Assembly: GCA_001643675.2 (NCBI GenBank)
Contig: LSRY02000032.1
Coordinates: forward strand, 186,001 to 250,000
Direction: 5' to 3'
Length of the DNA: 64,000 nucleotides
DNA from: Monocercomonoides exilis PA203
Lineage: Eukaryota; Protista; Preaxostyla
How positions within the stretch are numbered: the first letter of the stretch is position 1; each line of letters starts with the position of its first letter. The position numbers and the translations under genes were made by a program. The notes beneath the pieces were generated by a model. It searched no databases, was not told where the DNA came from, and saw nothing but the letters and a program-made list of their open reading frames with translations. Below, in pieces: positions 42,611 to 64,000 of this stretch.

Positions 42611-42999
42611 CCAAATAAAAATAAAAATGTTTTAATGGGCAAATATTTTTTCAAAGAAATCTCAAACACATAAAAAAATTTATTTAAGTGCTTTCAAAAA
42701 CATCACTTAGATATTAGAATTTTATTGGTTTCGGTTCGAAAATTTTTAAGTGTTGCTCTGAAATTTTTTTTTGAAAAAAACTTTTATCACTTAATCAAAT
42801 ATCAGAATAAAATGAAAAAAAAAGAATCCATCTATAAATCGAAATTGCTATAAATAAAACAATACATGTTGTGAATTTATCAATTTAATTGTGAACTTCA
42901 ATAATAAAAAACTTAAAACATAACAACGAAAGGAATGTTGGGTGAATGAAAATGAAAAATCCTGCGCTCTGTGACTTGAAGATGAATAATAGACTTATT

Positions 43000-44068
43000 T
43001 CACATCAGAGGCGTTGCAGTAAAAATTATTGTGATTGCTCTGGAAAGATTTTTCTTGGTTGAAAAAGACTTCAGTTCTGCGTATTATTAAATACTTGTTC
43101 TGCTCCTTCCGCGCGCTCTCAAACATGCATCTCATTGTTACCGTTGCTACGGATAAGATCTGAAAGTGGAAGATTATCAATCTGTTAGGAACACGTTCAG
43201 GGATTTTTTTGGAGAGGAAAAGTGAAGAAACAATAAACGGAATATTTGACACTTTTTTTGAGCTTGGAAGCAGGATCATGCCATCATGCGCAACGATGAA
43301 TTTCCTTAATTTATTTTGCTTGGAGGAATGCATTTTGAACGAAATGAGCAAGGATTCTATGAAGCTAGGGAAGATACTATTCCTCCGTGTTGGCTCACTT
43401 TTCCATGTGAGTGTTGGAGAATCGGAGGATCAAAACAAATACAGATTGCAAATAATGTATTTTCATGGGCCTGGGCTGCTTTTGCGATTTTTCCTGGCTG
43501 GCAGAAGAGCAGATTTCGACTTGAGCAAAACTCACGATTTGCAGAGCAAGCGTTAACTTTGATTTACTGGCGCATTTACAGGGTTCACGACAAGAACCAT
43601 ATGAAAAACGAAAAGACATCCGAGAAGGATTTGCTAAAAATTTGCTGTTTTGATGAGAGAGGCAGGAGATAATCGAAAAGATTGTGCTGCTTGATTGGAA
43701 AACGCATTCATTTATCTTTGGAAAAGCATTTCATTTTCTGCAGCTCGCTCCATATCACCAATAAATTTAGATGAACGCATGCGAATGCTCACATCCAAAC
43801 GCCAAAAAGGAATCGGAAAAATAAACATTTTGAAAATCGATCGATATTTTTTTTCTTCATTGCAAGATTTTTCTCGCAATAATCAAATTGAAAAGCAAGG
43901 ATATATGCAGAGTTCTATCGTTGAGAACAGCTGAGATTCTGAGATGGAAATGAACGGAAAATGAGTGAAAACGACAAGTAATACACGAAAAATTGAAGGC
44001 AAGAAAGAAAATGGAAGCATAACATATGCTAAATGATAGAATACTCTATCAGATGAAATGAATTAGGC
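43000..44068 (+). mobile_element. Highly degenerate retroelement relic (RT plus RNase H, probably DIRS-like)
   Basis: FLVEKDFSSAYY*ILV near 43052-43099 resembles RT motif DLKSAYHQI. KINILKI near 43820 and NTLSDEMN at 44040 resemble DIRS RNase H HINxLE and NxxADxLSR. The three motifs are in the expected order. Confidence 0.45.
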
Positions 44069-44082
44069 GCAAAAGATAGGTT

Positions 44083-47000
44083 TCACGTTTCTGTTTGGGT
44101 GCTTCTGATTTCCGAATCGATGAGCGTCTCGCTTCCATCGACATTGTCTGTGGCATTCTCAAAGCCAATTGCATCTGTAACTGTGAGGATCGCAGCACCA
44201 GACGGGAAATGAGTTATAAAGTCTCTTTTGAGCTCAAAAAGAGAAGGGCGTGCAGACGGCGATTGTGACACGCAATTCTTCACAAGGATATAGAAAGCAG
44301 AACATTGGACAACGTCCAATTTTGGCCTTTCGCCTTTTGTAATTTTGTCTCCAGCTATTACTGCCTCATACTCGCCAAACGGGATCTCCAGCGTCAGACT
44401 CTCCCACAGCATCATCCCAATCGAGAACGCAACTGTCTTCTTTGTTGCTCCCATCTTCTTGTTGATCAGCAGCTCTGGTGCCTTCCACCGCAGACACTCT
44501 TTTTGAAGTCATCCTCATCCTCAAAGGCCGACGAAGGTGGTGGTGATTTTGAGAATCTCTCGCTCTTCACAGAAACATCAGAGGAAGAGGTGACAATTGT
44601 CGAGGTGGAAGAAGAGATGGATGAAGTGTCTGAGTCTGAGGAGCAGTCGGAGTGGAGGGCAATGCAGATAACCATGTGTTCTGAGAAGAGAACAATGTGA
44701 GGGCTGAGGTTGGTAAGAGAAGGCAATTCGTTTTCTTCATCAAATGAATGGAGTGCGAGATTGGCCACCCAGAACAGGATCTGAGCAGCTGTCATCTCCC
44801 TCTCTTTCAAGGATCCGATTGCCATCTCCTTTGTCTTGTTCCTTCCATGAAGAAGCATGAACAGCGAATCCCTCAAGTCCACAATCAACTTTTCGTGAGG
44901 CGATGAACATGCCATAGCATCCACCAGATTCGACATGGATGAGGTGGTTGGACACAGATCCTCCCCCGAACAAACGTGGATTCAGTGTCTGAAGTGTCTG
45001 TGGTTGAAGTGGATGAGATGGATGGTGAAGGCGATCTCTTTCTTGTCTCTTCCTCATCATCAACCTTCTCCAGCACCCATTCGGGGATCTTGTCCGAGTC
45101 TTTTCCCAAGATGTATTCAGTGGAGCCACTCTCAGACAGAAGGTGCTCTGATGACTCGGAATGCTCCATATTCGTCTCATACACCCTCTTCTTGATCCTC
45201 TCCTCATTCTTCTTCTCTGCCTCCCTCTCAGCCCTCCGCCACTGCTCCTCGGGTGACATCTCCATCGTCACCATCTCGAATGCCTTCGGATCCTTCTTCA
45301 CTGTGTCATTCACAATCACTTCCAGCTCTTCAGTCCTTCTCTTTTGCTTTCTCCACCTAATAGTCACAGCAACAATTATCAACAACAAGACGATAAATAC
45401 AATGCAAGAAACAACAATTATAATCCACAATGAATTGACTCCTTTTCCACTTTCAACAGATTTTTCTTCTTCTTTTTGCTTGGGCTCGCTTCTATTCTTC
45501 AATATGAACGATTCGGTTTTTGATGGAAACGATGGATTTCCAAACAGAATGCTCACAGCAACTTCTGTCTCTGCGAGTGCAGTTGTCAAATTACTGCTAT
45601 GAATTACACATTCGACTTCTCCTTCCGAGATGAATCCGTCTTCATTAAAATCATACTTCTCAATCAGCTTCTCATCGCCTGTTGTGTATGTCAAACCGAA
45701 AGACAGACCACATGGCAGAAACAATGATCCTTTGAACCTGATTTTGTTGTATTCCTCAGCTTCTGATCCCACAACCAGGGCAGATTCCAGTTTGGGAATG
45801 AAGAAAGGTGATTCTCTCTCCCCTGCTATTCCACCAAGTGTGCATCCATCATTCAGAACCCATAGTGAAGAATTGTCCTTCACTCCATCTCCACCTTTCA
45901 AGCTGGAAATTGTTATTGAGGCAGAATCAGAGCAGATGATGTTTCGGCGAAGGGAGGGATATTTTTCAATGAAAGGATTATTGTTTGCCAGCATTCCCAT
46001 TTCGATAAATGTTCTTCCTCCTTTTATAGTTATTCCTCCTTTCGATGAATTCTTTATCATTATTTCTTTTGACTGAAGATTGGAATTTTCAATGTGCACA
46101 AGAGATCCATTCCATTTGCAGATTCCATCAGCAGCAATATCATTTCCCAACTCTTGTTGATTTGCAAGCATTCCTGAAAAACTACATGAGCTCAACGAAA
46201 TGTTTTCCGAATCACAGATATTTATAATGCTCCCTTTATGTGTTGTGGAAATGCAAGATTCACAAGAACAATTTGAAAACATTGCATGAGTGAAAGATGA
46301 AAGAGACACTGAGAGAATGGAGGCATCTGGCGAGTTGCGAGTGCAATTCTCGAATGAAGCGCTCACAAGAGATATTGTTTCCAAAGTTATATCGTTTATT
46401 GAAAAGATGCAACCTTCAGATAGATTCGCCCCATCAACAGATACTCTGTCAAATACAACATTTTTGCAGTCTCCAAGCTCAAATACATTTTCTGAAGCTT
46501 CAATCTGTTTCAATTTCGCATTTGCCAACGAAATGCGATCTCCACTCAACAGAAAAGAAGGCTTATTGAATGAAAGGAATGAGATTGAGCAGTTGTCAAC
46601 ATGAAGAATTCCATTTTCTATGCTCAGCAATGTGGAATTAAGAACAACAGCTTCAACGCTTTCTGACTCTCCAACTGAAGAGAAATCAACAAATGATAAA
46701 GAAAGTTCCCCACTTGCTTGATGAATGATAGAACTTCCTGAATAAGAAAATGGCTGACCAAAGTTGAAATTCAATCTCTCAATCCGAACTTTCCCTGATG
46801 TTGTGATAACATTTCCCTCATCATAACTAGCAATTGTTGAGTTCAGATGCACCAAAGCGGTAGAAGGAGATTGCAATGAGCGAATGGTCACATCATGAAC
46901 ATCGCATTTCTGGAAGATATCTGTTTCCCCTAAGATCAACAGCTGTGAGAATAACGATGGAATGATGTGTTGAACTCCATCATTCAATGAATTGCATGGC

Positions 47001-50000
47001 ATGCTGAACTCTCCGCATTGCTTGCTATCTGAATGATTATCTGCAACAGAAGACACAAATATCGTCTCGCTCTGATATTTCACAACCCTCAACAAAAGAT
47101 CTTCTTCATCCAGAAATGTGTCTGCTGTGCAACCCCATATTGCGAGCTCCTTCACAAATGGAGCTCTGAAATCCAGCAAGAATTGTTCATCTGCTATTTG
47201 ATTTTCTATTGAGTGACACCTCACATACACGTCTCTCCCTCTGAACGCAGAGTTGTCTTTGAATGTGATATTGGAGAGAACAAAATTCAGTGGTTGTTCA
47301 ACTGTTGAAGTGCATCCCAGAAACAGCCAGCCACCTCTTCCAGTGGTTGAGCAGAAGCACTCAGAAATCGAGCAAAATGAGCAGTCAAACTTTCCTCCCT
47401 CATTCAACACACAAAACATCCCTCCTCCCTTTCCACACTTCAACCCTCCACACTTCCTCATCGTTGTGTTTCTAATAACCATTTTCAATGGCTCATCATC
47501 ATTGGTATTTCGAATGATGGGAATATCATTGGTTGTGTTCTGGGTGACTTCTTCGAATAAACTCCACTCAATAACAATATCTTGTTCCTCTTCATTTTTT
47601 TCTCTCCCTGAACTCTTTGATATGCTCAATCCACTCGCCCTATCAAGTTGAACGTCCTTCATTGTCAGATTTTTGATATTCAGAATTGTTGATGATAGCA
47701 CAGAAATAACATCTTTTTCAAAGCGCAATGATTGGATAGATTCAAAATTCAACAAAACAGCTCCTACATCTGCTTTGATCAGCCCAAAGTTAATCATTTC
47801 TTCTCTATTGTCTCCTTTTTTAGTGAACGAACAATCTTTCACCGTCAACAGTCCTTCGCTTGATCCTATATGCATCAAATAGTTGATTCCGCTTGTGAAT
47901 GAAGATGGAATCACAAACTTCATCAGCTCGAAATTGGTGATGCCACAAATCTTCATTGCTGCTCCTTCTGCTCCTTTAAGAGATGAAGCAGATTCCAAAG
48001 TGCACACTTCTTCATCACTTGATTTTATTGAAACTCCGCTGATATCAACACATTTCTGAAGGACACCTTTTCCAATGATATTAATATTCCTTTCATTTCC
48101 TTCTGGCAGTCTTGTCAACGAATGTTCCATCGACAGACACGGATAATCCAAGAATCCACAAATACACACATCCTTTCCATTGCCCCCAATAAATATCTCT
48201 AACCCAAGTGAGAACCAAAAGTACACCAGTGGAATTGCATTTGTTGTGTCACTTCCATCAAAGCCTCTCATGGAATCCAATGAAACATCAACAAGATTCT
48301 CAGATACAAATGGAAGCGAGGCATTTGTGATGCTCTTTGCCAAGTTAGGCGATTCGACAAACAGGTCATTTCCATATTTTGCAACATTTGGCTTATCTGT
48401 ATCAAAAATGGGGGATGAGATCACAAACGAAGAATCGTCATCAATCAGCTTCAGTGCCATCCCTCCTCCAAAACCAGTTTTATCTTCTCCTCCTGGAGCT
48501 GTGCAACCTGTGAATGCGCATGAAATAATATTCAATTGAGTGTTCATCTTCATCTGCACGAAAACAGCACCTCCTCTGCTTTCGTCAGATTGCACACAAC
48601 ACTCAAAAGTGCACTCTTCAATATTGATTGAAACGTTTTCGTTTTCATCATTGCTGTTATCAATGCTGATGCAGCCTCCGCTTCCAGCAGCCCTATCTAT
48701 TGCTGTAGCATGGCATTGGCTTGCGTTTAAATATTGAATGTTTCTGCATTCAATCAAACATCCGTTTTGCTCACCATTTCCGGAAAAGTTGCTTTCCATA
48801 ATTTCGATCGAAGGGGCTCCTCCGCTTCTTCCATCAACAACAATTGCACTTGTCTGCCATCTGATTGCATTCCCAAACAGATTGCTTATCATCACTTCGC
48901 CTCCTTCAATCTTCACAAAGGAGATATCCAATTGATTTTCAGATGCCATAACCCCACAATTCTGAATTGACAATTTGTTGGAAACACAATGGAAAACACA
49001 CTCATAAGATGCAATTCTTTCTTCAAGAGAAAATACCACTTCACTAAATGTGGTTTGGATGTGCGTCTCGAATACTCCGATTTGAATTCCTGAAAAAACA
49101 AATGAAATTCCATAATGTGAAGCATTTCCATCTCCAGTCACAATCCATTCTTTTGAGTCCATCCTCAGTTCTTCTCCAAACGAAAACGGCGAATCCAGTT
49201 TTATCGATTTTTTTTCACCAGAAAATCTCAATCCCACTGCTTTTGTGATTGTGTTGCATGGAATCTGAACATATCCACACCCGCTGAAATCATGTGCATT
49301 CTGACCACCAACATGACATGGTGCTGTGAAGTTATTCCACAGATAAACCACAAGCGGAATTTCACATCCTTCATTTGTTGTTGATCTCTCAAATCCATTC
49401 AGCTTATCCAACTCGTTCATATCGGCATCGAAGCAAAATATTGCTGTGCTTGTCACAATGCTCAAATCATCTGCATCTAAAAACACATCTTTCCCTTTCT
49501 TTCCTTTGCATCCATCAAATTGCACGCTCCTCAAAACAAAATCAGATGCTTCCTCATCCAAATATATATATATCCCTCCTCCCAATCCTTTGCTGCCTTC
49601 AATATTTGTGGATGCTTCGCAACTCGAAAAGCACATCTTTTTCACTTGTTCATTTTCATTTCCGTTGCTTGAAAGAGATTCTGTACCATTGCCAATACTG
49701 AAAGATGATCCACTTTTCATCTGCACCCACAACCCTCCTCCATTCCCCCCTTCACTTTTACAAGAACTAAGATTTCCTTCTTCAAACATCAAAGAGCAGC
49801 TGCTTTCAAGTGTGCATTCTATTGCTCCCCCGTTTTGACCTTTCACTGCAAAGTTCGAAATGCCAGTTCGAATGATTTCAATTATCTTTGCATCTGTTGT
49901 GGAGATAAGACGTGAGGATGCGATTCCTTCTGATGAAACGATCGAAGAAATATCACTGTCACTCATTTGAAGAGAAGCGTTGCACCTCACTTCTATTAAT

Positions 50001-53000
50001 CCTGATGCATAATTTGTGACAATTTCATTCAGTTGAACGCTTTTCAAGTTGGCTTCTGTGCTGCTTCCAGATAACGAGATCAATGGACATCCATTCAAAA
50101 CGATTGATGAAGCCAAGAATGAATCAATAGCCAAGGGTCCTGAATTAACAGACAAAAACATACATTCCAATTCTGATGATGGATTTTGAAGGGAAAGAGA
50201 ACACTGAGACAAAGTTAATTGAGAAGAAGAAGAAATGAAAGTGGAATGAAGAGGAAGGGAAGATGGGAGAGAGAAGATGAGCCTTGACAATTCAGTTTCA
50301 ATGGTTGCTGTTAACAACGCTGAATTGGATGTTGTGCTTGCGTCAGAAACTGTCCAACCACTTTGATCATCATTTCCTCGAATAACATGCTTCTGGCTGG
50401 ATAAAACAAATTCATCACAAACAGGAATTGTTCCCTTCACAATAACTTTCTTTTCTTCTGTTTGATGTGTGAGTGAGTGCTTCAAAGTCAAACAAGGGAA
50501 TTGAGCAATTCCGCAATGTAAATGATCATATGACTCAGCGTTACTCACATATATTTCTTCTGGTGTGGGAAGGAGATAAATGCACAGAGGGATAGCAACA
50601 CTCGTATTTCCGTTGTCGAATCCTCGCACTCTATCAGCAGAATCTGTTGATGCTGTTACGCATGTGATATTTTGTGATTTTGCGATAACTTCCAGATTTG
50701 GTGAAAGGACAAAGATATCTCTTCCCCATTTGGCTGTGTTTGCTCCAAAGGAAGATGATATCAGGAAATCTGGATTTTCATTCAGCAATTGAAGAAGGAT
50801 TCCTCCTCCAAGTCCATTCAATGTGGAGCAAAAGCACTCATCAAAAGATCCGCCATTCACTTTCACTTCATTTCCATCACCGACACACAGTATCATTGAA
50901 CCTCCATCAGTCGATGTTGTGCTTCCACATCCAAAAAACGAACAAGAATTCAGCTCAATACTTGCCTTATCGTTGGAAAACGAAATCACAGCTGCTCCGC
51001 TGGTTGTTCTTTCTATTCCATCAAAGGCACACTCAGACAATGTTAATGAAATTTCATATGTTGAAGAAAGCGAAAATAACGAAACGGCGGAGATAGCCTT
51101 TGCCCAATTCACACGTTCCATCTGCAACACCCCATTCTGAATATTTATCAACTCTGTAGAAAATGCTGTTTGAGCTGAGTGTCCGCTTCCAGCAGATATA
51201 TTTAATCTGCTGATATGCATCTCTCCTGTTCCAACGATCTCAAACAGCTTTGAGCCACGATTATTTACATGTGCCGAGTTATGAACAAGGGAAATGTCAT
51301 TCACAGTCAAAGTGCCTGTTGAGGCAGAAAAAAGAGACAAGCCAGCTGCTTCTAATTCTGTTTGGATTGTTGAACTCAAGTCACTTTCTCCATAAATCGA
51401 TAAACCATCTGCTCCACAATCCACATTTTTTGTCACGATTATTATTCCAGTGAGTATTTTGATATCCTTCACAAATTCTGGAATCAGTTGAGTCAAACAA
51501 TAGCTGATGGTGCTGCATGGATAAGATTCATTAATTCCACATACAAATGCATCCATTGCATGAGGTTGTGTTTCAATCGAAGAAACAAATCTGACTCTTC
51601 CTCCATCATTCCTTAGCCATTCACTTCGATCAACGATTGAATAGAAGTCTATACCAACACGAATTCCAGTCTGACGAGTTGAATAGCAATTTCTGTCTAT
51701 CGCATTGCTGCTTTGATTTTGTAAGAGAATATCACAACCTCCAACGCCTCCCGTGTTTTCATGGAAAAAGCAAAAAAATAAGACTTTTATCGACACATTT
51801 TGAGAGCCACTTATTGAGATACCTCCACCTCCCCAAAAGGCATAATTCTTTGTAAATTGGCAATTAGAAATGTTTGGATATGCGATCATATTCCAAATCT
51901 GAGTCCCTCCTCCAATTGGCGATGAAGAGTTTGACGTTGTGCAGTTGTAAAACAAACAATCGGAAATACAATCACCGGTTGCATTGTTTGATTTCGCATA
52001 AACACACAATCCACCACCATCGTTGCCTGCAAAGCAATTTCTGAATGAGCTATTTTTAATGATGTATGTATTCTGAGGACTTTCGATGCAAATTGCGCCT
52101 CCCTCTTCATCAAAGTTTCCATTCGTAGCTTGGCAGTTCAAAAAAATAGAGTCACAAATGGAAATCTGAGAAATAGATGCTGCGTATATTGCGCCTCCCC
52201 TTCCACTTTGCGCAATATTTCCTTGAAAATAGCAATTTGAAAGAGTGAGGGTGGATGCAGTGTTCCCTGTTATATGAATGGCGCCTCCATTTGTTGTTGA
52301 ATTGCAATCAATCCATTCAGAATTACTCAATGACACCGAGTCTGAAGTGTTGATCCTGCTTTGGCTTGTATATCCATCATTGCGACCTCTGTTGCTGATT
52401 ACAGATGTATTTTTGCAATGAAAACGGACAGCACCTTTCAGACCAAAAATGACAGAGCCAAAAAATGCATTTTCTGTTGAAATCAACAGGCAGTTTTCAA
52501 TGGAGCTTTCCTCCGTTTTTCTTCCAATGGCACTGGGCTTGTCCGTTTGCAATAGCTTTCCTTCTCTTGTGATGTTGTGTATGATTGTATTTTTGATGGA
52601 AAAAGAGTGGCTGTCAATCCCACAAATCAGCCCACTTCCACAGAACCTCAAATCGCTGACCAAGCAATTATCCATTGAGATTGATGACTCTTTCCCTTCA
52701 GCAAAGCAGATGGACTGCACAGCTTCGTTCTGCGATTCGTGCTCAAGCGTCAAATTGACAAAGCGGAGAACAGATTCTCGATTTTCAAAAGAAATTGGAG
52801 AATTGGCATCTCTCACCAAAATACTTGAACAAATGCAAACAGCCGAATATTTTTCAACGATGAAAAGGCTTCTTGTCTTCTGCTGCACGAAAGCCATTCC
52901 AACAAGCATACTCGAGGCATTTTGAGTCCTCCATGTGCCTGCCACCTCTGACATCAAACCAGAAAGATCATTTTTCCAATCCTCTTCCATCTGCTTCCTG

Positions 53001-53197
53001 TTCCCTGTATCTCCCAATGCACACAACCATTCTTTGTTTTTGGTTCCTTCGTTCTCGAGAGGGTGTTTCAATCTCATCTTCGTTATCCGTCCTTTCTTCA
53101 AGCCCATTTTGTCCGATGCTCCATCCCCCAAGCAAAACCCAGTGCTCTCGCTGCTGCAAACACCACCAAGCACCAAGAAAGAAAATATCAAAATCAT
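44083..53197 (-). CDS. Giant (~3000 aa) single-pass surface receptor: signal peptide, tandem Cys-capped right-handed beta-helix modules, TM, C-lobe-only pseudokinase; two single-base frameshifts in the tail
   Basis: MILIFSFLVLGGVC signal peptide; GG[AG][ILMV] repeats; five D..CG....PC.[TS] caps; TM LWIIIVVSCIVFIVLLLIIVAVTI followed by RWRKQK; tail [RWKAPE]..AFSIGMMLWE.LT.EIPF..GERP..C.SQSPSARPS. Adding one base at the G5 (44963-44967) and A5 (44500-44504) runs restores the frame. Confidence 0.85.
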
Positions 53198-53255
53198 CTT
53201 TTTGGGATGATTAAAAAAAACAGAAATTATGGAACATTTTTTGTAATTTTTAATT

Positions 53256-53401
53256 TTTTCTTTCTTTCTTTCTTTCTTTTTTTTTTCTTTCTTTCTTTCT
53301 TTCTTTCTTTCTTTTTCTTTCTTTCTCTTTCTTTCTTTCTTTTTTTCTTTCTTTCTTTCTTTCTTTTTTTCTTTCTTTCTTTATTTCTTTCTTTCTTTAT
53401 T

Positions 53402-53441
<40 letters not shown>

Positions 53442-53547
53442 TTTCTTTCTTTCTTTTTCTTTCTTTCTCTTTCTTTCTTTCTTTTTTTCTTTCTTTCTTT
53501 CTTTCTTTTTTTCTTTCTTTCTTTATTTCTTTCTTTCTTTATTTATT

Positions 53548-53583
<36 letters not shown>

Positions 53584-53671
53584 TTTCTTTCTTTCTCTTT
53601 CTTTCTTTCTTTTTTTCTTTCTTTCTTTCTTTCTTTTTTTCTTTCTTTCTTTATTTCTTTCTTTCTTTATT

Positions 53672-53711
<40 letters not shown>

Positions 53712-53813
53712 TTTCTTTCTTTCTTTTTCTTTCTTTCTCTTTCTTTCTTTCTTTTTTTCTTTCTTTCTTTCTTTCTTTTTTTCTTTCTTTCTTTATTTCT
53801 TTCTTTCTTTATT

Positions 53814-53853
<40 letters not shown>

Positions 53854-53941
53854 TTTCTTTCTTTCTCTTTCTTTCTTTCTTTTTTTCTTTCTTTCTTTCT
53901 TTCTTTTTTTCTTTCTTTCTTTATTTCTTTCTTTCTTTATT

Positions 53942-53985
<44 letters not shown>

Positions 53986-54087
53986 TTTCTTTCTTTCTTT
54001 TTCTTTCTTTCTCTTTCTTTCTTTCTTTTTTTCTTTCTTTCTTTCTTTCTTTTTTTCTTTCTTTCTTTATTTCTTTCTTTCTTTATT

Positions 54088-54123
<36 letters not shown>

Positions 54124-54232
54124 TATTTCTTTCTTTCTTTATTTCTTTATTTCTTTCTTTATTTCTTTCTTTATTTCTTCCTTTCTTTCTTTCTTTTTCT
54201 TTCTTTCTCTTTCTTTCTTTTTTTTTTTTTTT
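53256..54232. repeat. (TTTC)n satellite of about 1 kb with a 270-bp higher-order period
   Basis: The same variant pattern recurs at 53341, 53611 and 53881; near-pure pyrimidine strand. Confidence 0.93.
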
Positions 54233-54250
54233 TCATTTTTTATTTATTTA

Positions 54251-54430
54251 GGACGAAATATTTTGCTTTAAGTATTTTGTTCAACACATTGCTTCAAAGA
54301 TTTTTCTCAATTTTAGAATTTTTCTATATTATTTTGCATGTGATAAAATTTTTGTGATGATATGATTGCAGAAAAAGTTTTGAACAAATCTCTGTTTTTT
54401 TCAAAATGCCAAAATTTTCGCTCCATTTGA
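54251..54430 (-). repeat. Dispersed ~200-bp non-coding element, copy 3, upstream of the giant receptor
   Basis: Reverse complement contains CAGAGATTTGTTCAAAACTTTTTCTGCAATCA and AATTCTAAAATTGAGAAAAATCTT, matching copies 1 and 2. Confidence 0.7.
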
Positions 54431-54480
54431 ACAAATAATTTCATTGGAAATATAAGTCAGAGGGGAACAATAAATTTTAT

Positions 54481-54600
54481 CATTAGATGAAATTTGAATA
54501 GACTTCTTCAATTCAAATAAACTCATTTTATTCAAATGAAATTTGTTTATTTTAAATGAAGTTGGTATATTTTAAATGAAGATAATTTATTCAAATTAAC
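54481..54600 (-). repeat. Degenerate ~20-bp-period TTCAAAT/TTTGAAT element; inverted copy at 58600-58735
   Basis: The 17-mer at 54484-54500 is the reverse complement of 58715-58731, with collinear flanks. Confidence 0.6.
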
Positions 54601-55386
54601 GCTGAAATCCATCTTGAAAGGTATTTAAAAAAATTATGTTTTATCTTTCTAAATAACTAATTGATACATTTGGTGTTGTTTTTAAAAGAATAAATAATAC
54701 AATTTTTTTTAACAATTTTTATTTTTTTGTTTTTAATTGGAAATGTTACTAAATTCCACCAAAATGTGCTTCAAAGGCAAAAAAAAAAAGAAAAGAAAAA
54801 TTTTGAGAGTTTAAGGTTTATTTCACTAATATTTGTATGTTTATTTTGGAAAAAACACAGATGATACGATTTTCATTAGGATAAAAATGTTGAGAGGAAA
54901 AGTGAAATGCTCCGAACAGTTTCATTTTATGAAATACAAATAACTGCAAAAGTGTACGAAATGAAGCGTGTAAGTTGACAAACATGATTTTCTTTTTTCT
55001 TCTTCCTCTCCTTCCAACTCTTTTTCATCCCATATTATCTCCTCCCAGATGCAAATCCCCAAATCCCTGCCTCCTTCTCCGTCTCTGATTCTTTTTTCTC
55101 CTCTTTCATCTCTCTTCACAATTCCTTCCTTTTTTCTCCTTCCCCTCTCCATATCCATCGCCGTTCTCATCCCCACCTCCAAATTCACCTCAATCTCCAT
55201 CTCTCAAACACCCTCTTCTCCAACATCTCATCTCCCCAATCCCATCTATCTCTTCCATCCCATCCTTCATATCCACTCAATCCATTCACCTCAACCATTT
55301 CTTCCTCTTCTTCCACTTCCACCAACTCCAATTCAATCCCCTCATTCTCCCTTCACTCATCCCTCTCCATCCACTCAACCAATTAT

Positions 55387-55875
55387 TCATTTTCAGAAAA
55401 CAGAGTAGAAAGTTGTTCGATCACAAATTGGTGCGGAACTGGATGGTATTTCTGTATTGGTGCTTTTCCATCAAACGGACAATTCCTGTTCACAACATGC
55501 AAGTGTATTTCAAATTCTGGTGGTGATGCTGCTGGTTCTTTAACATTTCATTACCCTCCAAGCAACAAACCAAGTCAGTTTTTGGTAAATGATTGTCAGT
55601 TTATAAACAACAAAGTCGAAAATCCAACCACCTACGGTGGTGCTGCGCTGTGCTGCACAAACACCTTCACTTGGATGAGTGGAGTAAAATTCATCATATT
55701 TTGTTTCTTCGATGGAAATATTGCAACTAATGGCAGAGGGAATGATGTGTTTTTCAATGGCAGCAGCATTACTCAATCTCCTTTCCAGCAATGTGGCTCA
55801 ACAACTCCAACGAAAAGAGCGTGGAACAACAATACAGCTTATAATGCTGAGTGCAACAGTTGGCCTCCAATCATC
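55387..55875 (+). pseudogene. Fragment of the beta-helix N-terminal domain, paralogous to 23790-24278
   Basis: Collinear nucleotide similarity (e.g. TTGGTGCTTTTCCATCAAA, CCTCCAAGCAACAAACCAAGTCA, AATGATGTGTTTTTCAATGG) ending at CCAATCATC in both. Confidence 0.85.
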
Positions 55876-56014
55876 TTATCTCCTTTTTTTCAAATGAAAA
55901 TTCATGAGAAATTTCATCTCTTCATTCTCTTCATTCTCTTCCTCACCCTCTCTTCCTATTCCTTCCGCATCGACTATGTTTGTGAAAATATACCTTTTTA
56001 ATGTGAAGCTGAAG

Positions 56015-58330
56015 CTACAGCTTCCGTGTCCACTTCTCCAAAACCTCATGTATTATTTCCTCTTTCTGCTTTTGTTCTTTATATTTCAAAAAAATAAACT
56101 TCATGTCTCCATCAACTTTCTCTTCTTCCTCCTCCTCCTCTTCCTTCTCAATATCAATCGAACTTCTCTCTATCTCTGACTCCTCAAATATCGCCAAATC
56201 ATTCTTCGATATTTGCATTTGTTCCTCATCTTTCTTTTCTCCATCTGAACTTCCATCTAAAGTTATGTCCAAAGACCCATCTGCTGATTCTTCTTCTGCT
56301 CTCCTGTTCTCCTGTTGGACGTTATCGGATGGAGAAGAACTGCATCCTTCACTTTCTGTAAATTACTGTTAGTCTGTCTCTTCATGTGTCTCCGCCTTCA
56401 CAAACCTCAGCCCACTCATCCCAAGCGCCTCCACAACCATCTGCGCAATCGCCTCTTCCAGCTTCCCCTGGTTCTCTTTGATTCTCTCCACAAACTCTCT
56501 GTGCGCTGCCGGATACCCACCTTTCACTTCATTCCCATCACCTCCCTTTCTCCCTCCCTTTTCTTCTCCCTCTTTGTCTCCCTCTTTGCATCCCCTTTCT
56601 CCTTCCTCTGCCTCTTCCCGCTCCTCCAGCACCGCCAGCGTAATCGCTGCTGGAAACAACCAAATTCTCCATCCTCAGCCTCGCCGCCTCCAGCACCTTC
56701 TCCACAATCTCTCCTTCTTCACACACTGCAACCCCTCGCCCCATCACCTCGTCGTCCAGCTTCACCTCCATACGCCTCGACTTCGGCGATCACCATATCT
56801 GCAGTGAAGGGTCAAACAGATTGTAGATTGACGGGAACGCATTCACATCCGCCTCCACAAATACCTTCATGTTCCCCGACTTCGTGCCCACTAACGCAAC
56901 AAGCAACTGAAGCGGTTCCACCAGCGGAACAGAAAGCATTGCCAAAAGCATCATATCGTAGGCACACAGAACAACCCCATACAGCATCGCCCGCCGCTCC
57001 ACTTCATATCCCAGCAGCGTCCGCAGCGCAAGCCGCGACAGCGGCATGTGCCGCGCATCACCCCAGCTATCTCAGGCACAACAATCCGCAGCCGCCTCTC
57101 GATGTCGTCCATCACTGCCACCTACGTGTTTGACTCCATCACCACAGAGGCATCCGAAGAGTCAATCACAGGCGCTGATGGTGATTGATCATCTTCTGCA
57201 GCCTTCTTCTCTTCGATTATCTGCCTCGAGTATGGTGAATCAAATTGGCATTCTGCTCCAAATCGGATTGATGAAACAGATGAAGAAAGCGGAACTTGAT
57301 CTGGAAGAAGAAAAAGAGGAAGAAGAAGAATGAAGAGACGATGAAAATTAACCTTTGCTTTCTACGGCACATGAGAAGCAGTATTTCATTGAAGGTGAAA
57401 GAATGTGTTTTCGAGTGTTTCTGCGTTGAATCCCCACCAGCGATAAGTGAGGGCGAGAAGGCAGGAACAGATCATTGCAGTTCGAAGGATATGAAGAAGA
57501 AAAAGAAGAAAAAGAAGAAGTTATTGATGAAATTATTTGATATTTGGAATAATGAAGGTTATCGACAACAAATACAAAGACTCTCGTAAAAACACATGTG
57601 AATCTGAATTATTCTTCTTTGGTTGCATATTCTTCTGGCAAGCAGTTTCCACTGAATCCTTCAAACATCCAACTTGCCCATTCACCTCTTGTCAACAAAA
57701 AATAGGTAACAATGGGCAATTCATTTCTGTTTCTTCATTTCCTCATTTCCTCTTTAAATTCCTTTTCTTAGATAAAAAATATCTTTCAACTTAAGCATTC
57801 CCTCAACCAGAATAAATATTTGAAGTTTTGTGAATCATGAACACTCTCAATTTTCGTATTTCCACTTTTTCTCACCAGTCTTTCTTTCTTTAAAAAAAAC
57901 CCTTTCCTCACTATTCTTCATCTTGCTGAAAACTGATTTCTTCTTCTTCAAAGCAATTCGATTTATTTCTGTTCTGTTGTTCGTTGTTTTTTTCCGCATT
58001 TTCATTTCATCACCATGTACTAATTTTTGAATATTCATATGATAAAATAACAATCCATCCATCACAGTTCAACAAAAACAAACATTCAACACAAACCTAA
58101 TGCATTTTTTCTCGTTCGTATCTGCATATTTAAAGATCAGTGCAACATCAATGCGCCAAGAAGACACAATTGAACTATAAATCTTTATTTCACCTTCCAT
58201 CAACAATATGCGTATAAAAGTTGTGAACTTCCTCTCTAAAAGAACTTGTGTGCTCCTAGAATTTCTCTTTCATAAGATCTGTTGTCTTGTAAACCAAATT
58301 TCGAACATCTGAATTCTATAAATTCCATAT
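56015..58330 (-). pseudogene. Decayed acidic/lysine-rich gene of unknown family
   Basis: Chain of short same-strand ORFs (56015-56272, 56369-56659, 56538-56771, 56790-57047) broken by stops and frameshifts. Confidence 0.4.
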
Positions 58331-58599
58331 TTTTTTTTATATAATAGTTTTCACTCAACAAACTCACTCAGAGAAACATTGAAAATTGCTTTTGATTAAT
58401 GTATTTTAAAGTTTATGTGTTTGGAATTTCCTTTAATTGCATCCAAACTAATGTGTTCATTTATTTGAATTTCAGAAAAATGAAATCATAATTTCACTTT
58501 TACACAAGAGAGAAAAATACATATAAATAATTTTTATCAAACATTCAAATTATAATGTTCATTATTCTGTTCTTTTTAAAATCATAACAAAACAGAAAC

Positions 58600-58735
58600 T
58601 CAAATGAAGTTGGGAATTTCTAAATGAAGTGAGCTTATTTGAATAAAGAAAGTTTTATTCAAATAAAGTTATGTTTTATTCGAATAAAATGAAGTTATTT
58701 AAATAGAAAATTTTTATTCAAATTTCATCTATTGA
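58600..58735 (+). repeat. Inverted partner of 54481-54600, upstream of the second giant gene
   Basis: GAATAAAATGAAGTTATTTAAATAGAAAATTTTTATTCAAATTTCATCTA matches the reverse complement of 54484-54533. Confidence 0.6.
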
Positions 58736-59621
58736 AATAATACTTTTTAGAATTTTCCATGTAAGCCTTATATGATAGTTTATATGCAACAATCAAAATG
58801 AAACAAACAAGCATTGTCTGAATGATAATCTGTATAATCCTTTTTCACATTACACTTTCTTTCGAGTTTTGAACAACTTTTTTTTCCAATGGAATTTGGA
58901 AAAAATAAACTGAAATATGGAACACTTATAGTTTATGACATGGCAATTGCAAGAACAAATTTTAGATAAAAACTTTGACGAAAATGTGATTCTTAAAAAG
59001 GATCGGACTTCTTTCGATTTTTTCTCTCACAATTTTCTTTTAAATCATTCAAAGATTGTTTAAGAGAAAAAATTAAAAAAAAAAAATATAAAGTTTATAT
59101 AATTGTGAGTTTTGTTTTTGAAAATGAGAAACTGAATGAAACAATTTAACCAACACAATTATTTTTTGAAAGAGCATTTCAAAAACAAAATCCAAGGATT
59201 TTTAACACATATGCGAATTGTTGCGAGAAAAAAAATGTTTCTGTTAAGCATTTGAAACAAAAATTAAAAATCAAATCATGATCACAACTTTTAATCATTT
59301 GCTGAGGACTTTTCTAGTTTGATATAAAAATTTAAAAAGAATAATAAAGCAATTCACAAAAATTGTTTCATTTTATCTATTAATTTATGTTGAATCTGAA
59401 CAAAATTAACAGAAAAAACTCATGATCAAAAATTTCCATCCAAATAAAAAATTAATTTTTTCAACAATTTTATATTTGGTTTATCTAAAAAGGAAGTATA
59501 TGGAAATAAAAAACAATTCCTTTTAAATGGAAATAACAACTGTTGAGTTTTTTGATAAAGATCAATCATTAACCATTAACCTTCAGATCTCTAGCATTTG
59601 AATAATACTCATTGCTCTTGC

Positions 59622-62600
59622 ATGTTGACACTCAAAAATGCCATCATCATCGTCTTGCTTTTCCACCTTCAACAGTCTTACAGATCACAACACACGTCCA
59701 CTTACAAAAATTCAAATAAAAACAACAATCTTCCGGATAAAAACCAGAGTATACCCAACTTTTATGAAGAAACTTCAATGAAAAAGAAGAGTGAATGCAT
59801 TAAATCATTCACAAAATGTGCGACGCCAAGTATTGCTGAAAACACCAATAAGTACCAGAATGCTTCAAAACAAATAAAAAGCAACAAAAAAGGCACATGC
59901 TCAGAAGTTCATTTGTCTGGCAAAGAAAAAGAAATGTCGCACTTCGCTCGACTGAAAAATGGAGAAATTTCATTCCCAAAACCATTCAAGCTGGAGCATA
60001 CAACAATAAGGAATTACGCAAGAGTACTCAATTCCAGCTGCGGTTTTCTGAATGGTTTATTGAAAGCTTACACTACCAACAACAGCGTCATTCATGTTGA
60101 ATCTGGAAGTGCTATAATCAAAAATTGTCGCGTCGTTTTCGATCGGCATTCTCCTGCACATATTGCTTTGTTGATGAATGGTAATGTTTCGCTCATCAAT
60201 ATCTCTGTTCAACACATTCAATACTCTCCAAATTTCACTTCAGTCGCTGCTTGTCCAAAGATTATTTCGCACAAATCGCATTGTTCACTCACAATTATAT
60301 CATCAATTTTTGAGTCATATTGCTCCATTTGCAGCACTCCCTTTGTAGCATCAACTGGAATATATGAAATATCGTTGGTCAATTCACTGTTTGTGAATAT
60401 CACTCACAGTACAATATTGAATGATGTGTATGTGAATGATACAGGTCATACGCAATCCGTTGTTGAAGGATGCATAATTCAGTGTGTCGATTCACCTTTC
60501 AATGGCGGATTATTTAATGCATTGAATTCTTTTGAATTCAATCATTTCTCATCGAACACATCGTATGTGCGTTGCTTGAGAAAAGACAATCTTGATCCAT
60601 TCATAAAAAATGATTCAATGTTAAATCAAAATATCTCTTCAGGAGATGCAACATATATCGATTGCATTTTTCAGACACTTCAACACAATGAAGGCTCCAA
60701 TGGAAATGGAGGTGCCATTTTATTCACTTCTTCAGGATTATTAACAGTTTGTAAATGTTCATTCAACGATTGCTACTCATCATATTGTGGAGGTGCTATT
60801 TCTTTCAGAGTCGGAGGAAAAAATTTGAACTTGACATCAACAAGTTTCAATCAATGTGTCGCAAACGCATCTGGTGGAGCAGTTGATTTGTACTACGTTT
60901 ATTCTTTTTCTATTAAACTCTCGAATTCAACAGGCTGCACAACTAATCATGTTGGTGGGAGTTTAATGGTTTACGAAAGTGACACCCAAGGGATTATCGA
61001 TTCTTGCAATTTTAAAAATTGTCAAAAGAAAACGCAAGAATATTTAGGAGGAAGCATTGGCTTTCACAAAATGGGATGGGCAGTTGTTACTGATTGTATG
61101 CTTTGTAATTGTACAAGCGAGCAATGCGGAGGAGGTATATGTTGGGACATAGTCCCAGGGACACATCCTTCAAAGGTACTTTATTGTTTTTTTGCAAACA
61201 ACTCTGCTGAAAACAAAGGACATGATGTGTTCATCAATGATGGCTGGACTGCTATCAATGAGAATACCTTTGTTTTATGCCGTTCAACAACTGCTACACA
61301 AAAAAATAGAGTAGTGAAGGCTTCACAACAGCACAACAACTGGATTCCAACAATCGTCTTCCATCCCATTCTTGTTCACGGATCATTAGGCTTGGATCAC
61401 GAGGCATGTGGATCATCTGACACTTCGGATGAACCAGGAAGAAGATGCAAAACAGTTGGCTTTGCTGTGAGCGTAACTGTTCCAGAGATACAGATGCTCA
61501 CAATTGCTGTCGAGGAATGTAATTGCACTGAAACATCCATTTCAGTATGTTCACTAAGTGTGTCTGTGGAAGGGATAGGAATTAGAAAATCGAGGCTGCT
61601 TGCAAACTCTCAAAACGGCATGGCTCTGGTGGAGATAACATCAGGAAAAGGACACTTCAAGGCGCTCACATTTGAAAGGAATGCAAGTGTATCATTGTTG
61701 TCTGAAGTGTTTGCTGTTAAAGAGGAGCAAGGATGGCTGGAAGTTGTAGAATGTTTGATCACTTCAACAGAAGAATCGTACACGGCCGTTTTCAGCTCGT
61801 CTGTCCTGAATGTTAAAGCTGGAACCGTTCTGTTTGATTCTGTGGAAATAGGCCCCACATTATTGTCAGATGTTGCTGTGGTAACAATATCTGCAGAGAA
61901 AATCGTAAATGTAGCCTTTACCGCAACCACAATGAAGAATATCAAGAGGCAAATTGGAAATGGATGTGGTGTTGAGTGCATCTTGTCAAGTGGATCAAGT
62001 TTTGTGATTACAGATGGAATATTTCAGAACTGCTCCGTTGATGCAGACAGCGCAAGTGGTGGAGGGGTGTGCATCCGTTTGAAAGAACAATGTGAATTTG
62101 TGGTGAATGGTTCAGCAGCATTTGAAACATGTTGTGCTCCTGATGCAGATGTGCAAAGCGGGAAAGGCGGAGGATTGATGATGTGTGTTGAAGAATTCGA
62201 TGCAACGTTTGAAGTTGCGGGCGGTGTATGCTTTTCCAATGAGAGGCCAAACAGAGCAGCATCTGGCAAAGATATGTTTGTGCAGTGTGGAAGAGAGATA
62301 TCGCTCCATAAAATTGTCAGCAAAAACATATTAGGATTTGTTGATGAATTGCAGTGCTTCGAGGATCCATCCAGACTGTGTGGATCAGAAAATGCAAGTG
62401 AAAATCCCATTATCCCACTTGATATCTTTATCTGTCCGTTAACAAGTACAATACATGCAGATGGAGAAAAGGGCACTGATCATCCCCATTGTGGAGCACA
62501 TGCGTTTGCTTGCTCAACAATCTCATATTGTGTTGCAAACAGAATCTCTCCTCTTTTGAGCACTGTCTTGATTGAAACGAGTTCGTCAATTGGTAATGAG

Positions 62601-64000
62601 ATGGAGATTGCTTCATGCTCATTCACTCTGTCTTCTTCCTCAACTGAACAAAAGAATATCATAGTGGCAGACGAAGGTGAATGTCTCTCAAATGTACTTG
62701 TGTCATCCACTGTTGGCTGGTCAGTCTTGCAAATTTACTTTTCCCTTCCAACGACGATGAAGGCAGAACGGAAAGGATTCATCAGCTCATCGAGCTCGCT
62801 TTTGATTGAGGATTGTGAAATTGCATTCACGGACAATCCGCAACATCCAATTTCCTTTTTCATTCTTTTCATTTCAGATGGCATCACAAGACTTAACAGA
62901 TTCAAAATGATCACAAAACTGAAGTTTGGCTCTTCAACACCAATAGTGATGCAAAATGGCCATACGTTTGTGGTTAACAGCAGCACTGTTTCAGGAATTT
63001 CACGGATCGACGGAGATGGAGGGTGCATTAGAATTGAGGAACAAAGTGATAGCAACAGCGCTGTGCAATTGTTAAACAGCTCATTTTCTTCTTGTTGCAC
63101 TCGAGAGAGCCACCCTAAAGGCGGAGGGATGTACGTTTGGCTGGAAAGCAGCAGAGAGTTGACAATGTCAGACGTAGAGTTCAACAAGTGTTCAGCAACA
63201 AAAAATGGAGAAGAAGAGACTGAAGAGAATGGATTGGGCGGCGGAATTTTTATTGAAGAAGGGAACTATCTCATGCAATTTGAACTTCAGAATATGATTT
63301 TTGACGGATGCAACGCTTGGAAAGGCAAGAGAGTGTTTATTGCAGGAACAATGCTTGATGTTGTGGTTGATAGCATCCATTTCAATTGGAGCATGAGTAA
63401 GACTGAGATGGAGGAATTGGATGAACTGAATGGTTGGGAAAGAGCAACATCCAACGAGAAATACATAATCCCTCTTGTTGTGTATTTCTGGACCAACTTT
63501 TCTGGTAACGGATTCGTTAACGGTGCATCAGGAGCTGATTTCAGTGGATGCGGATTTGATGTTGCACCCTGTAAAACAATTGACAAAATCATAAAATTGC
63601 GATTCTCACAGGAGAAGATATCATCTCAATTAAATATCACTGTATCTTCCAACTCATCAATCTCATCATTCATCCAACTGATACAAAAATCATCAACATC
63701 TGATGCTTGCCTGAATGTTTCTGGAATCAATCAAAGCGATACAACTGTTTATGTGAATGATCCAGCAACTGAAAGCGTGCAGACATCACTTGTTGCATCG
63801 CGCATCCAGTTGCACCTCCACAACCTGGATTTCTCTCTTCCATGCTCCTTTGCTTATTGAGACACTTTTCTTGAGTCTGCTTCATCTTCAGCTTTCCTGA
63901 CTGTATGTCAGTGTTCTTTCCAATGTCAAATACAATCAATCTCAATGAATTTCGCAATTATGAGAATCGCTGGTGGAAATACAGAAATAGCTGATTGTCT
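59622..64000 (+). CDS. Second giant beta-helix surface protein paralog; in-frame TGA at 63858-63860 but coding continues to the window edge
   Basis: Hydrophobic N-terminus; GGAI repeats; caps DHEACG..RCKT, DHPHCG..ACST, DFSGCG..PCKT; LDELNGWER.T..YIIPLVVYFWTNF matches the other paralog. After the TGA, DTFLESASSSAFLTVCQCSF...IAGG stays in frame. Confidence 0.8.

Follow-up and report, generated by a model that had tools for sequence, protein, structure and literature searches.

The window analysed here is the whole stretch of 64,000 nucleotides taken from the genome of Monocercomonoides exilis PA203 (contig LSRY02000032.1, positions 186,001 to 250,000 of the forward strand). It contains two divergently oriented genes for giant proteins, gene W on the minus strand (44083-53197) and its paralog P on the plus strand, and our subject is the architecture of their products, the kinase-derived tail and the gene family to which they belong. 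The main open reading frame (ORF) of gene W lies at 44885-53197, where the ORF table and the translation give an ATG start and 2770 amino acids (aa); below it, the tail runs on in two other frames to a stop codon at 44083-44085. From its sequence, the product is predicted to be a type-I membrane protein with a signal peptide, a Pmp-like domain, five modules of about 380 aa, one membrane span and a cytoplasmic tail of 425 aa.

The start codon and putative signal peptide (aa 1-16; 53150-53197, on the minus strand like all features of gene W) were placed from the ORF table and translation, and the hydrophobic N-terminus MILIFSFLVLGGVCSS is compatible with a signal peptide. The N-terminal head domain that follows (aa 17-540; 51578-53149) carries Pmp-like GGA/FxxN repeats: within aa 304-481 (51755-52288) six matches to GG[AG]x are intermingled with seven to Fxx[NC], a pattern characteristic of Pmp-type repeats, and the Pfam family Chlam_PMP matches gene W below its threshold (16.1 bits for a cut-off of 20.6). 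Five homologous modules and a membrane-proximal stalk make up the rest of the ectodomain (45431-51577), as delimited by internal blastp and a recurring head motif: M1 (50552-51577), M2 (49316-50551), M3 (48197-49315), M4 (47054-48196) and M5 with the stalk (45431-47053). The motif CG....PC.[TS] occurs five times, at aa 553, 895, 1307, 1680 and 2061, and each of the five segments, 342-537 aa long, begins with its fuller form G.D...CG....PC.[ST]; the modules are mutually homologous at 21-35% identity (blastp E 1e-5 to 1e-17). The ectodomain contains 43 N-glycosylation sequons and 101 cysteines. A transmembrane helix is predicted at aa 2590-2612 (45362-45430), the sole segment of its kind in the protein, with a Kyte-Doolittle 19-residue mean of up to 3.7. 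It is followed by a juxtamembrane region (44980-45361) in which a Pfam search found no match and an alignment of 16 paralogs shows a charged helix (SPEEQWRRAEREAEKKNEE), a HSESSEHLLSESGSTEYILG.DSDKIP block and an acidic, Ser/Thr-rich linker. Last comes the pseudokinase domain (TFVRGEDLCPTTSS...LTVTDA; 44172-44979), spread over three frames in this copy and delimited by PF07714, structure prediction, structural alignment and selection; a Ser/Asp-rich insert, disordered in the model, occupies its activation-segment position (44531-44653). The original prediction had described a signal peptide, an N-terminal GGA-repeat domain, five modules, a membrane segment and a cytoplasmic domain, and this layout stands, with one correction: the cysteine motif heads each module and does not cap its end.

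The tail of gene W keeps the motifs SLFMLLH, RWKAPE, FSIGMMLWE, IPF, GERP and C..Q.P..RPS. GxGxxG, VAIK, HRD and DFG were looked for in it and none is present. Searches and folds of the corrected tail used the intact, otherwise identical paralog arm (L001 or L031), and the frames of gene W itself were not joined. Against Pfam, PDB sequences and, by hhalign, true M. exilis kinases, only the stretch from APE to alphaI matches, equivalent to positions 160-257 of PF07714; when the whole tail is compared with kinases by hhalign, only its C-terminal 88 columns align. The best PDB sequence matches are CSK, DLK, ILK and TAK1. PF07714 recognises the tails with E 1.9e-8 to 1.8e-13 and scores above PF00069, the best sequence and structure matches are tyrosine kinase-like (TKL) or tyrosine kinases (TK), and a tryptophan precedes APE, all of which places the tail, by similarity, in the TKL group. 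Across 166 family proteins RW[KM]APE is universal, no HRD-like or VAIK-like motif occurs, and GxGxxG appears once, at chance level. The slot of the catalytic loop reads L[ASTN]NLSPHIVLF and that of DFG reads VMH, ALH or AMH; neither the Asp or Asn of HRD nor the Asp of DFG, the marks of an active kinase, is found in any of these proteins, and relatives from Blattamonas and from metagenomes show the same losses. P168, E169 (the Glu of APE) and R244 (the Arg of alphaH-alphaI) are invariant over 33 divergent sequences.

We also searched for family members in which an active kinase is complete. The complete PF07714 domains in giant ORFs turned out to belong to cytosolic kinases that are unrelated and carry long low-complexity tails, and the two best PF07714 matches belong to an active receptor-type TKL kinase with a guanine-cytosine (GC) content of 61%, whose ectodomain has no similarity to the pseudokinase family. 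This kinase gene is present as two copies with identical scores in opposite orientation on one contig (L035, G000:C28:382644-383396, minus; L036, C28:460237-460989, plus). It has a membrane span, intact HRD and DFG motifs and an ORF of about 870 aa, and its GC content stands out in the AT-rich genome.

Structure prediction extends the kinase resemblance of the tail beyond what sequence matches cover. An AlphaFold2 (AF2) model of the domain, built from the alignment of 33 sequences that includes the Blattamonas and metagenome relatives and excludes true kinases, reached a predicted local distance difference test (pLDDT) of 79.2 and a predicted template-modelling score of 0.78; a model of all 425 aa of the tail, based on paralogs only, had a pLDDT of 35.6 and was unusable. 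In order, the model contains a beta-hairpin (residues 18-34), helices at the positions of alphaD and alphaE, two short strands, a disordered insert of 40 residues, and alphaEF to alphaI. The C-lobe elements from alphaD to alphaI, with the salt-bridge pair formed by the APE Glu and the alphaH-alphaI Arg, are present and have a pLDDT above 90 over most of the region. The N-lobe elements (five-stranded sheet, glycine-rich loop, beta3 Lys and alphaC Glu) are absent from the model, in which a single hairpin, with strands at 18-23 and 30-34, precedes alphaD. The sequence pattern NLVDAMAC...KLIVDL, followed by RDSLFMLLH, suggests that this hairpin corresponds to beta4-beta5. The Ser/Asp-rich insert (model residues 110-150, pLDDT below 50) lies between the beta8/DFG slot and alphaEF and is the sole long disordered stretch; in the relatives from Blattamonas and metagenomes, a short loop takes its place. 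The top Foldseek matches are RIPK1, ILK and BRAF (E ~1e-6), VIA-align gives Z 18 to CTR1, BRAF, ILK and the insulin receptor kinase, with an aligned part of 170-198 residues in structures of 250-300, and the structure neighbours in the ESM Atlas are all TKL kinases (TM-score 0.60-0.62).

On this model, the tail is a TKL-type C-lobe with one beta-hairpin in the place of the N-lobe, lacking the glycine loop, beta3 lysine and alphaC. Since HRD and DFG are missing as well, such a domain is predicted to be incapable of canonical adenosine triphosphate (ATP) binding or phosphate transfer. The original prediction had listed the conserved C-lobe motifs, each of which is present, and the absence of N-lobe motifs, HRD and DFG, which the family-wide counts bear out. 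Its further expectations, that the tail adopts a kinase C-lobe fold and that a serine-rich insert sits where the activation loop should be, agree with the model, although the term 'C-lobe-only' is slightly too strict for a domain that retains a hairpin before alphaD.

The family is large and its tail is maintained by selection. In the M. exilis assembly (82,301,135 bases in 101 contigs), a tail search gave 1148 first-look candidate places, of which the best 150 were scored, all with E below 1e-43; most of these 150 lie in open frames of 2,500-4,100 aa and about a fifth in short frames. In a comparison of 27 intact tails drawn from many contigs, synonymous change approaches saturation (pS ~0.58), so that the ratios of nonsynonymous to synonymous change (dN/dS) are rough values; they rise from 0.06 in the upstream half of the pseudokinase (pN 0.066) through 0.10 in the juxtamembrane region and 0.16-0.19 in the insert and C-terminal half to 0.26-0.28 in the stalk, 0.4 in the membrane span and 0.5-0.6 at the extreme C-terminus. 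The tail is under strong purifying selection: values of 0.06-0.19 at a pS of ~0.58 mean that its constancy is not due to DNA homogenisation alone. For the ectodomain, a comparison of gene W with its nearest intact relative MONOS_5378 gave dN/dS 0.22-0.45, with no stop in 2,745 codons, and the ectodomains of neighbours differ down to 22% identity. These values agree with the original prediction, which pairs a diversified ectodomain with a conserved, non-catalytic scaffold.

An exhaustive profile search recovered the M. exilis family together with divergent proteins that share the two-part domain and its losses, of which three come from the oxymonad Blattamonas nauphoetae and several from metagenome contigs. 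Two of the Blattamonas proteins, P0232 and P0250, are only 338-365 aa long and consist of an N-terminal membrane span and the dead half-kinase, which shows that the tail also exists without a giant ectodomain. In the family, kinase homology is combined with the loss of VAIK, HRD and DFG and with continued selection. The absence of HRD and VAIK from all 166 proteins, the purifying selection on the tail and the Blattamonas relatives together support a true receptor pseudokinase without an N-lobe rather than a decayed kinase, and the objection raised beforehand, that intact members might keep an active kinase, is answered by the same count.

The same gene set has been published as the 'protein tyrosine kinases', the largest family of M. 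exilis, with 332 genes of which 320 were assigned to TKL (PMC6759080); it was annotated via PF07714 (PMC6759080, PMC8767320) and overlaps the 'unclassified repeats' of the assembly (PMC8767320). Where the published account has 332 kinases, we find a non-catalytic half-kinase attached to giant modular surface receptors, with more than 1,100 candidate tail places. Our literature search found no paper that links oxymonads or Monocercomonoides with pseudokinases in this sense, or that treats the family as beta-helix receptors.

The ectodomain follows one plan across the family. In 161 proteins the motif G.D...CG....PC.[ST] occurs one to eight times with a median spacing of 381 aa, and protein length grows with module count, from about 2,600 aa at four modules to about 3,800-4,050 aa at six to eight. 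Only Cys and Gly residues are invariant in the modules. GGA[ILV] and FxxN repeats are predicted to form a beta-helix in Pmp proteins, and several observations point in this direction for the family. When 46 modules were compared with Pfam, PF13229 Beta_helix alone was matched repeatedly (5 of 46, best E 3.4e-5), and it reaches 25.5 bits in one head domain for a cut-off of 25.9. Feature neighbours in the ESM Atlas all fall into DUF1565, Chlam_PMP or Beta_helix clusters, both for one module (0.95) and for a head domain (0.84, to be read as a lead only), and a module profile run against 5.8 billion sequences matched a Chlam_PMP protein with E 4e-7. From these indirect matches the modules are probably right-handed beta-helices.

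Paralog P starts with an ATG at 59622, fills the window to 64000 on the plus strand and continues beyond it to C28:253763. It has 2714 codons and one stop, an in-frame TGA at codon 1413 (63858-63860). As the original prediction had it, P shares the ectodomain modules of gene W: the two ectodomains are homologous (E 2e-42 over 1738 aa), though only 22% identical, with about 50% identity in the DNA and just two recognisable module-head motifs left in P. The 3' parts of the genes are related in quite another way. By blastn, an inverted repeat of 2,941 bp at 99.83% identity (3 mismatches, 2 gaps) has its left arm at 42929-45867, covering stalk, span, tail and 1,154 bp of 3' flank, and its right arm just beyond the window end (window-equivalent 65980-68920); at the repeat boundary the DNA identity of W and P steps from ~55-69% to 100%. 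Along gene W the nearest relative shifts from MONOS_5378 (aa 1-900 and ~2000-2600) to MONOS_2123 (aa 900-1900), and its ectodomain is closest to two other genes on the same contig. Judged by these comparisons, gene W is a mosaic, and the 99.8% identical 3' part that it shares with P would be the mark of a recent gene conversion or inverted duplication.

Such repeats recur elsewhere: a further inverted pair, 2.8 kb long at 99.5% identity, and a direct pair of 2.3 kb at 99.3% were present in the 30 fetched loci. The 150 best-scoring tail matches include at least 16 pairs of neighbours in opposite orientation, which have identical scores and are separated by 2-36 kb; often one member of the pair has only a short open frame, and partial duplication of 3' ends in inverted orientation seems to be common in the family. 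The 1,154 bp that follow the stop codon (42929-44082) accompany the tail, and in three copies (L001, L002 and L004) they share one exact endpoint; one of these copies is ~180 kb distant and 97% identical. This suggests a defined 3' unit, either an untranslated region or a repeat boundary. The 6.4-kb spacer between W and P contains a relic of the family's N-terminal head domain (55384-55875, plus strand; blastx, 71% identity over 165 aa to P0081 aa 467-631, E 3e-67). It also holds a (TTTC)n array of ~1 kb (53257-54232, 253 copies) that starts 60 bp upstream of the start codon of gene W; the array has a higher-order period of 270 bp (95% match) and makes the spacer strongly pyrimidine-rich on the plus strand.

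Taken together, we give a probability of about 0.7 to the reading that W and P are ordinary members of a family of about a thousand copies, encoding giant surface receptors with a presumed beta-helix ectodomain and a non-catalytic half-kinase tail. Each protein would be a type-I surface glycoprotein. Outside the cell a rod would be formed by one Pmp-like GGA/FxxN domain and one to eight modules of ~380 aa, probably beta-helices; inside, after the single membrane span, a conserved charged juxtamembrane stretch would lead into the kinase remnant, whose activation segment appears to be replaced by the disordered Ser/Asp-rich insert and which would not carry out canonical catalysis. The ectodomains may recognise gut bacteria, mucus or food by binding their surface polymers, probably glycans. 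On engagement or clustering of the receptors, the half-kinase could serve as a docking platform that recruits a cytosolic partner, which might be an active kinase or else an adaptor linked to the cytoskeleton or to endocytosis, and the Ser/Thr-rich linkers might provide phospho-acceptor sites. A bolder version, which we put forward as a tentative idea that is rather more probably wrong than right, sees in the half-kinase a novel type of domain for autonomous signalling or docking: a pseudokinase without an N-lobe, fixed in oxymonads and almost unchanged across about a thousand paralogs, by which a huge set of recombining beta-helix glycan binders would be coupled to signalling or uptake. If true, a protist would have an innate 'recognition repertoire' directed at gut bacteria, with a dead enzyme as its foundation.

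Several points weigh against this account of a beta-helix receptor with a half-kinase tail. In the 110 conserved residues upstream of the insert, sequence similarity to kinases is undetectable; hhalign of this half against eight true M. exilis kinases returns a probability of 0.25%, and its kinase identity comes from the AF2 model and from pattern matching. The reading of SLFMLLH, a C-lobe motif in the original prediction, as alphaD/alphaE is for this reason carried by the model and has no support at the level of the sequence. As for the ectodomain, the profile of 46 modules had no match among PDB sequences, and the evidence for the beta-helix fold consists of borderline or sub-threshold Pfam matches, language-model neighbours and motif patterns. 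The selection estimates share the roughness that comes with near-saturated synonymous sites. Finally, both local copies carry reading-frame defects, because of which the W-P locus may be non-functional.

These defects have to be weighed individually. The last 1.3 kb of W equals that of P except for two one-base deficits, seen in a DNA alignment of the arms: a run of five G where the paralog arm has six (44963-44967, minus strand), and a run of five A where it has six (44500-44504, minus strand), just before CLRWKAPE. Correcting one base in each homopolymer restores the tail. One could therefore suppose that both genes are dead here, the frameshifts cutting off the tail of W and a real nonsense codon interrupting P, as two recent pseudogenes in an otherwise functional family. 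W is indeed short by one base at two sites relative to an intact arm; the TGA of P falls in a unique region of the ectodomain, where short-read polishing should have worked, at a position that varies among relatives (R, H, Y or Q); and with about a fifth of the 150 scored tails in short open frames, broken copies are evidently common. The defects of W, however, are homopolymer under-calls (G6 to G5, A6 to A5) of a kind typical of Nanopore sequencing, and they lie inside the 2.9-kb duplication, where short reads map ambiguously. The assembly was produced with Nanopore (ONT) reads, and frameshifts that survived polishing have been reported for it (PMC8767320). Apart from them, W has its 2,745 open codons under an ectodomain dN/dS below 0.5 (0.22-0.45) and a tail identical to the intact one. 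The frameshifts of W are thus either Nanopore errors or very recent changes, with about one chance in three that they are real, while the TGA of P is more likely to be real; that both genes are dead we regard as a substantial minority possibility.

Other alternatives accept intact genes and explain them differently. It might be that the inverted repeats and cassette-like fragments switch ectodomains in a programmed manner, so that a single gene or a few would be expressed at any moment, as with the surface antigens of parasites; the 2.9-kb inverted repeat brackets two divergent ectodomains, a second inverted pair and a direct pair turned up among only 30 sampled loci, donors change along W in a mosaic pattern, and a relic ectodomain fragment lies in the spacer. 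Inversion between identical arms, however, would alter no protein, nothing was seen that points to dedicated switching machinery, be it a recombinase, an expression site or a switch signal, and patchy exchange among neighbours is ordinary gene conversion in large tandem families. With an ectodomain dN/dS below 0.5 and M. exilis regarded as a commensal, we consider programmed variation decidedly unlikely. We also find it unlikely that the modules are enzymes, that is, membrane-anchored arrays of pectate-lyase-like or DUF1565-like domains that degrade polysaccharides for feeding. Many right-handed beta-helix proteins are glycan lyases or hydrolases, and the language-model neighbours of module and head carry DUF1565, Beta_helix, NosD and Pectate_lyase_5; yet no catalytic family reaches its Pfam threshold, modules that are 21-35% identical with only Cys and Gly invariant fit a scaffold better than an active site, and Pmp-type GGA/FxxN proteins are adhesins. 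Likewise, the tail could still be a non-canonical enzyme, like some one-time pseudokinases, and the extreme conservation of its upstream half (dN/dS 0.06, with an invariant PTTSSMSNLVD...IVDLRDSLF) is unusual for a mere scaffold. The model, however, has no nucleotide-binding lobe, every canonical catalytic residue is lost in 166 of 166 proteins, and described cases of such catalysis retain a bilobal nucleotide pocket, which makes this explanation very improbable.

If W and P are receptors with a non-catalytic half-kinase, the closest functional analogues would be ILK and the receptor pseudokinases of plants and animals. ILK, a pseudokinase scaffold of the TKL group, is among the best sequence and structure matches of the tail and works without catalysis as a docking platform for parvin. 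It differs in being cytosolic, in having a complete bilobal fold and in binding ATP, whereas the oxymonad tail has lost most of its N-lobe and belongs to a protein with a membrane span and a giant ectodomain. Receptor pseudokinases such as BIR2, STRUBBELIG-type receptor-like kinases, PTK7, ROR and RYK are likewise single-pass proteins; their intracellular domain, of TKL or TK origin, no longer has all catalytic motifs and signals by protein-protein contacts. They keep both lobes, however, and have usually lost one to three motifs; their ectodomains are of leucine-rich-repeat, immunoglobulin or similar type, and they number tens of genes compared with about a thousand here. On the outside, chlamydial Pmps and Trichomonas Pmp-like proteins are likewise large, variable surface families of host-associated microbes with GGA[ILV]/FxxN repeats. 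Gene W has these repeats, but Chlam_PMP stays below threshold and a membrane helix with the pseudokinase stands at the C-terminus in place of the autotransporter barrel; most of the M. exilis ectodomain consists of another, DUF1565-like module, at whose head stands G.D...CG....PC.[ST]. Among anaerobic gut protists, the NEK pseudokinases of Giardia and the transmembrane kinases of Entamoeba are further lineage-specific expansions of kinase-derived, partly non-catalytic proteins, though they come from other kinase groups, have full-length folds, different or no ectodomains and far fewer copies.

We see in W and P ordinary, possibly damaged members of a remarkable family. For M. exilis, the model of a eukaryote that lacks mitochondria, publications describe the largest gene family solely as 'tyrosine kinases' (PMC6759080, PMC8767320). 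If our reading is correct, its kinome has been overstated by hundreds of genes, and much of the 35% of the assembly classed as 'unclassified repeats' may trace to this one family. The family would also be an extreme case of a pseudokinase, in which a C-lobe is strongly selected without a nucleotide-binding lobe, and it would give a tangible starting point for asking how a gut commensal that feeds on bacteria might sense what surrounds it.

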